From Basidiobolus meristosporus CBS 931.73 (lineage: Eukaryota > Fungi > Basidiobolomycota): 64,000 bases of DNA. Below the pieces are notes generated by a model, which was not told where the DNA came from, searched no databases, and saw only the letters and a program-made list of their open reading frames with translations. The position numbers and the translations under genes were made by a program. Below, piece after piece: positions 21,793 to 24,635 of the stretch (position 1 is the first letter of the stretch; every line of letters begins with the position of its first letter). The stretch is from positions 28,228 through 92,227 of the forward strand of contig MCFE01000338.1 in assembly GCA_002104905.1 (NCBI GenBank). The letters run 5' to 3'.

Positions 21793-23339
21793 CTACATCA
21801 CGAGCAACGTGTCGTAGTCATGCTCGCTGACCACAACCTCAATTGATTCCCCTTCGTTTTGAAACTGTTTCTCAAGCCTTGGTTTGAGTACGTGGTGAAG
21901 GTAGCTGCGTTCAGTATTTGGGTCTTGACCTGGCCACCCGAAAAGTTAGACTCGAACTCCAAAAAAAGGAATAACCCAAAGTCCCCGCTTACATAGAATT
22001 ACGCTCGTGCCCCTGGACGCAGCCATCAGCATGTCTTGACGGGACATTTCTCGAGTAAAATACACATCTGCTTTTACCGCGGCGAACACTGAAGGGTCTA
22101 AATAAACAAGAGTGAGGAGACGATAAAAACCGACACATCAGAGAAACTCCGCTTTACTTGAGCCGGCGTAGATCCCGATGGTACGAATGTTTTGTGAAAA
22201 GACGCCATCCTGTTGCGCATGCCTTTGCGATGGCGCCACTCGTACATGCTTTACGCTGAGATTGAGTTTGAGTCGAGCCACTATCATATCAAGGGAGGTG
22301 GGGTGGCTTAACGTCAATATTCGGACCACTCCGGAGCCGTCGAGTTCTACATGGAATTTAGCTTAGATTGTGCAATTAATGAAGCTGCGGAAAACCCTAC
22401 CGGTGGCACCAGGACTGAGGGCCATCGATGTGATGATTCCGTCTCCTAAAGCGCGACCCATCCAGTCACACACTACGAAGAGCATCCATTAAGTTCGCGC
22501 ATTATGTTACACAATATTGCATCCGTCACTAACCACCACCGTCACAATTGTCCAGAGCTGAGTGCGGCGAGTACACTGATATTCCATTGACAATACAGTT
22601 CATAATCAACGCCTGGCGCTCATCCGCCATATTCAACCTCTTCAATGGTTCGAACATCGGGGGTCGATAAGATATGATGACTCCGACTTTGGGATCAGCT
22701 ACAGCGTCATCTAGGACTTGTTTCGTCAGGTCAGTTGTCAAAATCACACGAGTAGCAAACTGACGAGTCTTCGGCGGCTCTGGAGATTCTAGTCAGTATA
22801 ATGTTGCTAAGTGACTATGTGGTCCACGAAGAAATACCTATCAATAGTCCCACATTGTCCCAAGTTGTATCAGCGAGGGAAAGTGGGGCTATTATTTCCA
22901 TGTGTCTCTCTACGCGAGATATCAGAGATTCGGAATTCGTCGAATTCATCACCAGATCGGGTGGAAATGTGAAGTGCTCCATAGATATCAAGGGTGGTGT
23001 AGGGCAGGATACCTGTATTGCGGAGGTTGGGGTTCGCGGGGTGGATGTTTGCGCATTCTCCAGCATAGAGCCTTCCAACAAAAGGCTCTCGTGCTTTCTA
23101 GGCGCAGACTCGTCTTGTGGAGGCAGCGTTCCAGTGAAATACTGGCAATTCTCCAAATGCTTTCTACAGTTGGCCTTCTTGTTAAGGATCTTCTGCTGAA
23201 AGGCCACCGTCTCCCCCTTTCTCTCCGCACAATATTTACATACTGCAAAACGATCCTTCTTGTTCGCCATCTCGTCTAACACTATGAAATGCTCGGAGAG
23301 TTCATGTCGAGGTCTACCGCGCTTTCTTACTTCTTTCAT
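21793..23339 (-). CDS. NIF3: BED-type zinc finger fused to a NIF3/YbgI-family domain with degenerate metal-site motifs, multi-exon
   Basis: One open exon: KRGRP...EHF...CKYC-x23-HLENC then APLSLADTTWDNVGLL; later exons ILTTDLT, SYRPPMF, VYSPHSALD, TREMSRQ, DPNTERSYL. Confidence 0.85.
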
Positions 23340-23647
23340 TTTTTAATACTCTATGGCTCCTTTTTCCTTCCACTAAACTCTTCCCAGTCATTAACGCCTT
23401 GTTGCCGTCGCGGGATATCAACACACCAGCAGGCTCAGATGGAAGAAATTTTTGCAAATGCCGTCTCCACGGCTCGGAAATTAAGTTGCTAATCGAATTA
23501 CTCATCCCATTGCCAACATGTTTCCAAATAGACAATTCCACAATATTCAATACCGAAATCGCGAGTTTAAATGCTCCACGAGTACCTAAGTTACTGGTAT
23601 TGGTAATCTTCAATCTTGTCCATTAGCTGGTTATAGCTACTGAAGCA

Positions 23648-24635
23648 ATGACTGAAAACGCTTTGGTCCCTTGGAGGTTCTGTAATCCGTACGCCAACCA
23701 GAAATACGATCCGGTCAGATCGTTTATTTTTAACGGGCATGAAAGTAAGCGGGGTGTATATGTTGGTGTGAATGACCGCTTACTTACCTTCTTCCAGTTG
23801 TCATACAACAGAATCAAGACCAGAAGATAGACATCACCCAAAACACCGGGAATATTGTGTGGGATGGGGTAAGAGTACTGAAATCGCCGGCGTGGTATAT
23901 TGGCTAACTCTGAGGCCCGAGCAGGCTTATATTCTGTCGAGATTCATACAGAAGCATGTGAAAGTAAAGGGGAAGAGATGCGTTGAGCTTGGTGCCGGGA
24001 CAGGCTTGGTGGGCCTCGTAACTTGGTCACTTGGTTTGTTAGCTGGCGACAAGTAATGGGCAGCGCCACATCTACTAACCGACCAATTTGACAAAAAGGC
24101 GGAAAAGTAGTCCTAACAGAGATACCAGACTTGATAGAGCTGACACAGAAAAACGTCGAGTTGAATACTCGCGCCCTAGTTGGTGACCTTTCGGAAGAAG
24201 ACGTTGATGTCAAAGTGCTGAGTTGGTACAGTGGTTGAGCGAAGATTCTTGAATGAAAGTGGTATTCAATCTTTACTACAGGGGGGATGAAGCCCAGATA
24301 AACGACCTGTCGCCCCCGTACGAAGTGATTCTAGGTTCAGAGATATTGTATCTAAAAGACTTCCACAAAGATCTGTTAAAGACACTTTGTCGATTGTCTG
24401 ATTCGAAGACGGAGATCTATATGGTATATAAGGAACGAGGCTTGGGTGAAGAGAAGTTCTTTATGCTGGCTAAGAGGTTCTCCTTCGATATCGAACAGGT
24501 GACTACTCCCCCGCTCGCAGTGATAGCATCATTTTCCTCATCTCAATATTCTAGGTACCCAACGAAATGATCGACGAAGAATTCCAAAACCAGCCGTATC
24601 GAGTGTTCAAGATGAAAAAGCTGGATGGGCCTTAG
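23648..24635 (+). CDS. Family-16 (METTL21/EFM-like) protein lysine methyltransferase, multi-exon
   Basis: TGNIVWDG, AYILSRFI, KGKRCVELGAGTGLVGL, YEVILGSEILY. Confidence 0.88.

Follow-up and report, generated by a model that had tools for sequence, protein, structure and literature searches.

Proteins of the NIF3/DUF34 family are nearly universal, and their molecular function is unsettled. They form toroidal hexamers, and the roles proposed for them are those of a metal chaperone or insertase, a transcription cofactor and a single-stranded DNA-binding protein (PMC8469502); NIF3 has been linked to the transcription cofactors Ngg1/Ada3 in yeast and Trip15/CSN2 in mouse (as cited in PMC8469502). 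A survey of DUF34 published in 2021 curated 226 fusion sequences, and the partners named for eukaryotic NIF3 are WD40, BolA, an FAD flavoprotein, RING-type and THAP-type zinc fingers, an EF-hand pair and a histone acetyltransferase (PMC8469502). The closest of these to the case described here is a THAP-NIF3L1 fusion catalogued in Trichoplusia ni (XP_026742495.1; PMC8469502, section 3.8 and Data Table S11). Another group of related systems is formed by hAT transposases and their domesticated descendants, whose BED fingers bind DNA (PMC3606216, PMC8097297). The grafting of a transposase-derived finger onto a host protein, even onto NIF3, is a known kind of event. Here, we analyzed a window of 64,000 nucleotides from the fungus Basidiobolus meristosporus CBS 931.73 (contig MCFE01000338.1, positions 28,228 to 92,227 of the forward strand; coordinates below count from the first letter of the window), in which a minus-strand gene joins a BED-like zinc finger to a NIF3/DUF34 domain. 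We consider it probable that this gene is a genuine, expressed and Basidiobolus-specific fusion, in which a NIF3 duplicate that lost part of its metal site received a hAT-type finger and would serve as a DNA-bound adaptor or regulator.

Like the T. ni protein, the Basidiobolus gene has a putatively transposase-derived, DNA-binding zinc finger N-terminal to NIF3/DUF34 in a eukaryote; unlike it, the finger is of the hAT type rather than the P-element THAP type, and the host is an early-diverging fungus rather than an insect. The NIF3 half of the Basidiobolus fusion is in addition a duplicate that has diverged and whose metal site is changed; note that the comparison with the T. ni fusion was made by finger type and lineage. 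Domesticated hAT BED proteins (ZBED1-6, DAYSLEEPER/RICESLEEPER and CGGBP1-like; PMC3606216, PMC8097297) likewise retain a hAT-type N-terminal finger in a host gene that has no working transposase, a likeness that lies at the level of fold and is weak (Z 2.4-2.8; E 0.5-7). However, they usually keep more of the transposase, for instance the hAT dimerisation or RNase-H-like domain, whereas here the finger stands alone on an unrelated host domain. The tables of the DUF34 fusion catalogue hold no BED-type or Basidiobolus entry (PMC8469502), PF01784 is the only domain on record for 120 listed NIF3 homologues, and a full-text search for NIF3 together with a BED zinc finger gave no literature on the subject as judged by titles and abstracts. 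As far as these sources go, the BED-like finger plus NIF3 architecture is undescribed. The initial annotation had suggested as much, which holds for the BED and NIF3 pairing in the DUF34 catalogue but has to be narrowed in view of the THAP-NIF3L1 precedent.

The minus-strand open reading frame (ORF) 23339..22815 opens with MKEVRKRGRPRHELSEHF and reaches the start of NIF3, APLSLADTTWDNVGLL, at residues 151-166. Its extent and its residue numbering (KRGRP at 6-10, EHF at 16-18, C34, C37, H61 and C65) were as given in the initial annotation. In our splice model, whose introns are all GT..AG and 54-63 nt long, the gene encodes a 416-residue product in which the finger is followed by a Ser/Pro/Thr linker and a full NIF3/DUF34 domain (Table 1). 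Met1 is the first possible start in this frame, which is closed by a TAG 5 codons upstream of ATG 23339. Residues 131-416 are identical (100%) to the public protein P0002 apart from 3 residues at an alternative exon-3 donor. P0002 is a 283-residue protein annotated on the same contig as 'NGG1p interacting factor 3 [Basidiobolus meristosporus CBS 931.73]', and it begins at Met131 (MNSTNSES) and hence omits the finger. The public gene model, from which the finger is missing, needs correction.

The finger and NIF3 are joined in one spliced message. Specifically, a contig of 962 nt and depth 56 from run X1 spans 23436-22838, 22779-22534 and 22472-22356, skipping exactly introns 1 (22837-22780) and 2 (22533-22473). 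It is spliced minus-strand complementary DNA (cDNA) that begins 97 nt upstream of ATG 23339, runs through the finger and links it to the NIF3 exons. Note that X1 is one of three runs holding this stretch, all labelled 'DNA?' and none listed as RNA; its spliced contig shows X1 to be cDNA. Of the single-exon fusion described in the initial annotation, the joining within one exon stood, with one spliced transcript and a second species behind it, but the last 7 codons of ORF 22815..23339 are read-through into intron 1, the exon stopping at 22838. Misassembly as the source of the fusion was ruled out by a genomic contig from run X2 that is colinear with the window. At position 22477, within intron 2, this genomic contig has C where the window has G, the sample being the same or a related one.

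The same finger-linker-NIF3 architecture is found in Basidiobolus ranarum (K7432_003540; P0001, 354 residues). Between the two species, 67 of 75 residues are identical in the finger (89%), 40 of 54 in the linker (74%) and 160 of 205 in NIF3 (78%). The first 130 codons differ by one 1-codon indel and contain no stop, and none of the eight substitutions in the finger falls at a conserved position of its family. By this comparison, the finger appears to be the most constrained part of the protein. As for the start codons, B. ranarum has Leu instead of Met131, and both species have Glu137 where canonical fungal NIF3 proteins begin with Met, indicating that the ancestral start is gone and that the internal start of the public model is not conserved. 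The alternative start at MNSTNSES, which the initial annotation had raised against its own reading, thus finds no counterpart in the second species. Given this loss of the ancestral NIF3 start, the finger-bearing 416-residue protein would be the main product. We call the fusion real because transcript, conservation and start codons are three independent lines of evidence. The P0001 gene model is itself mis-annotated at its 3' end: after 'IYAGS', the last 17 residues (338-354, SKAKEMLL...) match read-through of the intron that corresponds to the one after B. meristosporus exon 4, and the C-terminal NIF3 motifs of this species are therefore off record.

B. meristosporus also has a canonical NIF3, P0056, which is 281 residues long and shares 56% identity with the fused protein. 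A maximum-likelihood tree built from 24 NIF3 proteins placed the fused proteins of both species as the sister group of P0056 with a support of 99/99. The stem of the fused pair was 0.71 substitutions per site versus 0.16 for P0056 (4.4-fold longer), the terminal branches of the fused orthologues were short (0.11 and 0.16), and the fused copy was ~8-13 points below P0056 in identity to the four outgroup NIF3s compared. Intron 1 follows the same Ile codon in both B. meristosporus paralogs, indicating that the duplication was DNA-based. To judge by the tree and the gene structures, the fused copy is a Basidiobolus-specific NIF3 duplicate that evolved fast, a point of which the initial annotation made no use. 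At the canonical locus, an in-frame stop precedes the ATG by 13 codons, and no finger-like sequence was found within 2.5 kb upstream, suggesting that it was the duplicate that acquired finger and linker, through extension of its exon 1 at the 5' end. No second copy of the finger was found by tblastn within the window or beside the canonical paralog, and no transposase domain in the fused gene or in the 308 nt up to the next gene. The order of events would be addition of the finger before the species split, then a burst of change, then constraint.

The NIF3 half is full-length, with PF01784 (DUF34_NIF3) matching P0002 at E 1.1e-43 and 150 bits over profile positions 3-252 of 256. Full-length PF01784 is shared with canonical NIF3 (yeast Nif3, human NIF3L1 and P0056), as are, with P0056, the intron 1 position and the tree grouping; the differences are the 130-residue N-terminal addition, the longer stem and replacements at the metal site. 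Metal-site residues of eukaryotic NIF3 lie in YH, SPH..D, (M/L)xHH and HxxxE (PMC8469502), and we compared the motifs, as defined in the same paper, between the fused copy and 15 other NIF3 proteins, 14 of them canonical. The fused copy retains SPH..D as SPHSALD (238-244). However, YH is changed to YR (SYRPP, 204-208), in B. ranarum as well; within FTREMSRQD (350-358), the Dxxx(T/S)G(E/D) motif reads FTRE instead of FTGE and (M/L)xHH reads MSRQ instead of MSHH; and EHxxTER has become QDPNTER (CQDPNTER, 372-379), that is, EHxxTE is changed to QDxxTE, with the His lost and the Glu kept. The MSRQ and QDPNTER changes were seen in the B. meristosporus copy. All five motifs are intact in P0056, and P0056 and 13 other NIF3 proteins keep the metal-site motifs. 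Two His ligands of the dinuclear site and the eukaryote-specific HH pair are thus replaced in the fused copy, whose metal site is partly dismantled and whose metal binding is probably impaired. By analogy with other NIF3 proteins, the scaffold is probably still oligomeric.

The finger has the pattern C34-x2-C37-x23-H61-x3-C65 with H12 and F18 upstream, which fits the BED signature Cx2C...Hx3-5[H/C]. A phmmer search of 1.84 billion representatives gave 55 matches at E<=0.001, ~50 of them to residues ~8-75 alone and nearly all N-terminal in the matched protein. In alignment A1, made of 51 sequences, C34 never varies, while C37 and H61 are each present in at least 90%. The matches and this conservation place the finger far beyond a chance CxxC...HxxxC. 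The A1 consensus is H.L(T/S)..F..L.EKANK.NK.A.C..C....G...A...K.TNTK..C..HLK.C..F. The named relatives, with E down to 2.9e-11 and 32-46% identity, are N-terminal fingers of Glomeromycota (Dentiscutata, Gigaspora, Rhizophagus, Funneliformis and Cetraspora) and oomycete proteins (Achlya and Lagenidium), the latter named 'BED-type domain-containing protein' or 'Transposase' in UniProt. These fingers are direct homologues of residues 8-75, with the common pattern H..L(T/S)..F...NK.N..A.C..C...K.TN...C..HLK.C..F; unlike in Basidiobolus, they are followed by DUF659 or hAT dimerisation or are finger-only fragments, and none has NIF3. Specifically, relative P0021 matches Dimer_Tnp_hAT above threshold (E 5e-13), and P0005, P0016, P0030, P0031 and P0046 match DUF659 below the Pfam cut-off (E 4e-7 to 3e-5). 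The relatives returned by a profile search with A1 were all short, came from Glomeromycota or metagenomes and had no Pfam domain. When the finger alone was searched (P0001 residues 1-75), the only finger-bearing protein of 195-620 residues found was P0001 itself, so that the finger has no close paralog of this length in the database searched. The finger regions of P0006 and P0051 gave weak, sub-threshold matches to DUF7828 (PF25165; best 18.2 bits against a cut-off of 25.7), which may be a related finger family.

An AlphaFold2 (AF2) model built on the family alignment, with a mean predicted local distance difference test score of 73, has strands at 18-24 and 30-34 and a helix at 55-64, forming a beta-hairpin around C34/C37 and a helix bearing H61/C65. 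The model matched AlphaFold Database clusters named BED-type or DUF659 at E 2.9e-5 to 1e-3 (template-modelling (TM) score 0.66-0.78), clusters that belong to the same sequence subfamily as the finger. In the ESM Atlas, it matched zf-BED and ZBED1_RNase-like clusters at TM 0.50-0.63, with neighbours carrying ZBED1_RNase-like plus Dimer_Tnp_hAT. Among solved or reviewed structures, the top fold matches were ZBED3, the ZBED1 BED domain, ZBED2, DAYSLEEPER and RICESLEEPER 1-4 (E 0.5-7), and language-model features assigned the finger to a BED cluster (0.94). Next to the finger, the segment K6-R-G-R-P-R-H12 contains an R-G-R-P core, a classic minor-groove motif, that is identical in B. ranarum and looser in the relatives (G-[RK]-P-x-H); Pfam AT_hook did not match the KRGRP region. 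The linker has 24 Ser, Pro or Thr among its 60 residues and looks disordered. Taken together, we read the alignments and fold matches as those of a CCHC finger that is BED-like and associated with hAT elements; it belongs to a subfamily absent from Pfam and does not itself score as BED. One further ESM Atlas cluster, named 'arsenite methyltransferase family' (704 residues), aligns to finger residues 7-75 at TM 0.61; 63 of its 65 members are from Zoopagomycota, where this finger may have been joined to a different enzyme.

From these data, we propose the following course. An intron-containing DNA duplicate of a fungal NIF3 gained a 5' extension of exon 1 encoding a ~70-residue CCHC finger of the BED/hAT N-terminal kind, the R-G-R-P motif and the Ser/Pro/Thr linker. 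The ancestral NIF3 start was lost, and the NIF3 half changed fast, lost part of its metal site and then settled under constraint. In the present protein, the finger and the GRP motif may bind DNA and tether the NIF3 scaffold to chromatin, with the flexible 60-residue linker allowing several fingers of one oligomer to reach DNA. The whole protein may thus be a DNA-bound adaptor or regulator and not a metal-dependent NIF3. We infer DNA binding because hAT BED fingers and their domesticated descendants bind DNA, and the links of NIF3 to transcription cofactors make a regulatory adaptor role plausible. In a more specific form of this proposal, which takes up the multivalent chromatin or transcription factor suggested in the initial annotation, a NIF3 ring with impaired metal binding would, through the captured finger, bind DNA at several points and sequence-specifically. 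This form is built by analogy and should be taken as tentative and doubtful.

Details of the transcript as well as the outcome of domain and structure searches weigh against this reading. The transcript support is one assembled contig with no per-base depth, and a shorter transcript from an internal start may exist. This contig enters intron 3 by 45 nt (to 22356) and ends there, confirming the message only 5' of that point. In the same region (22347-22410), the public model uses a weak donor, GTGCCA at 22409, versus GTAGGG at 22400 in our model, both being in frame and 3 residues apart. Intron 3 retention or alternative donor use is suggested, and retention would cut the protein short after exon 3. 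Furthermore, an out-of-frame upstream ATG (uATG) at 23391 opens a 25-codon upstream ORF that overlaps the main ATG 23339 and could modulate translation of the fused protein. If the public model were right, the gene would encode an ordinary 283-residue NIF3 paralog from Met131, and the finger ORF would be an untranslated or incidental leader, a hAT remnant. The annotated protein does begin with MNSTNSES, the uATG could divert ribosomes past ATG 23339, and the contig data are compatible with an internal transcription start. However, it is the finger that is best conserved between the species (89% versus 78% for NIF3), across 130 codons with a single 1-codon indel and no stop; the whole finger lies within the spliced cDNA contig; Leu stands in place of Met131 in B. 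ranarum, and Glu at the ancestral start in both species; and the -3 position is A at ATG 23339 and T, a weak context, at the uATG. We regard the reading of the public model as distinctly improbable. The long stem (0.71), the lost catalytic-site residues and the read-through into intron 3, with the shortened protein that it would yield, could also be taken as signs of a decaying duplicate, a pseudogene in progress whose fused ORF is a neutral accident. This is scarcely credible, and we rejected it, since no stop interrupts the six exons and their splice sites are canonical, expression and splicing are seen in a contig of depth 56, the fused orthologues sit on short terminal branches (0.11 and 0.16), and both species have an intact ORF.

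On the side of the finger, neither zf-BED (PF02892) nor zf-BED_2 (PF26664) matched residues 1-70 or 1-75 at E<=10. Sub-threshold zf-BED was found in only 5 of the 51 relatives (best E 4.5e-4) and in 1 of the ten closest (E 0.27), and precomputed Pfam domains are lacking from all 35 short relatives. No solved structure was found in PDB by sequence, whether with the single sequence or the family profile, and the similarity in fold to solved BED domains falls short of significance (Foldseek E 5-7 for ZBED3 and ZBED1; VIA Z 2.8 and 2.4). The hAT-type BED finger named in the initial annotation is thus upheld by its hAT-type relatives and BED-named fold neighbours but not by Pfam zf-BED or by these Z values. 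A real fusion whose finger does not bind DNA would fit such results: depending on zinc, the finger could mediate protein contacts, RNA binding or localisation, or it could sense zinc for a NIF3 relative that handles metals. Pfam does not recognise it as a BED finger; ZBED3, the top PDB fold match, was solved within the mouse SCMC core complex, according to the entry title; and DUF34 proteins have been proposed as metal chaperones or insertases (PMC8469502), with H240, D244 and E378 retained in the fused copy. The loss of two His ligands and the HH pair nevertheless speaks against a conserved metal-handling role. In hAT elements, the BED finger recognises transposon DNA, and the relatives of the present finger are N-terminal in hAT-type transposase-like proteins; the adjoining minor-groove motif points the same way. 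We consider a finger without DNA binding unlikely and prefer the DNA-bound adaptor or regulator.

The two B. meristosporus paralogs amount to a natural experiment on a protein family of unsettled function, one duplicate having stayed canonical and the other having lost metal ligands and gained a finger. The fused duplicate, as its sequence suggests, points to a scaffold or regulatory role separable from metal chemistry. If a DNA-binding ring is indeed formed, a NIF3 protein would for the first time be tied directly and physically to DNA targeting, giving a handle on the 'transcription cofactor' side of NIF3; a hexameric ring would display six fingers and could bridge or cluster DNA sites or recruit an Ngg1/Ada3-type coactivator to chromatin. 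The gene would also be a clean fungal example of finger-only capture from a hAT transposase through extension of exon 1, and it highlights a finger subfamily in Glomeromycota, Zoopagomycota and oomycetes that is not covered by Pfam. The scope so far is one genus with two species.

Table 1. Features of the fused finger-NIF3 gene in the window.
Feature	Coordinates	Strand	Details and evidence
Fused gene, whole coding region	21793..23339	-	six exons, 416 residues; splice model
Exon 1	23339-22838	-	splice model; GTATTT donor at its end
Exon 2	22779-22534	-	splice model
Exon 3	22472-22401	-	splice model; GTAGGG donor at 22400
Exon 4	22346-22158	-	splice model
Exon 5	22097-21993	-	splice model
Exon 6	21929-21793	-	splice model; stop included
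5' leader, at least 97 nt	23340..23436	-	cDNA contig; holds uATG 23391
KRGRP basic motif, residues 6-10, AT-hook-like R-G-R-P core	23310..23324	-	sequence and family alignment A1
BED-like CCHC zinc finger, residues ~8-70 (H12, F18, C34, C37, C58, H61, C65)	23130..23318	-	phmmer, alignment A1, AF2, fold matches
Ser/Pro/Thr-rich linker, residues 71-130	22950..23129	-	sequence and B. ranarum comparison
Internal ATG, Met131, start codon of the public model	22947..22949	-	public protein P0002
NIF3/DUF34 domain, residues 131-416 (spliced)	21793..22949	-	Pfam PF01784, 15-protein NIF3 alignment

Upstream of the fused gene, a Methyltransf_16 gene (23648-24615, plus strand) lies head-to-head with it, with 308 nt between the start codons when Met1 is taken as the start. 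This arrangement implies a short bidirectional promoter shared by the two genes, at least 97 of the 308 nt being taken up by the leader. Over the window as a whole, the G+C content falls from ~43-49% in the first 42 kb to ~35-42% across 42001-64000, and this low-G+C part could be a repeat- or transposon-rich compartment.

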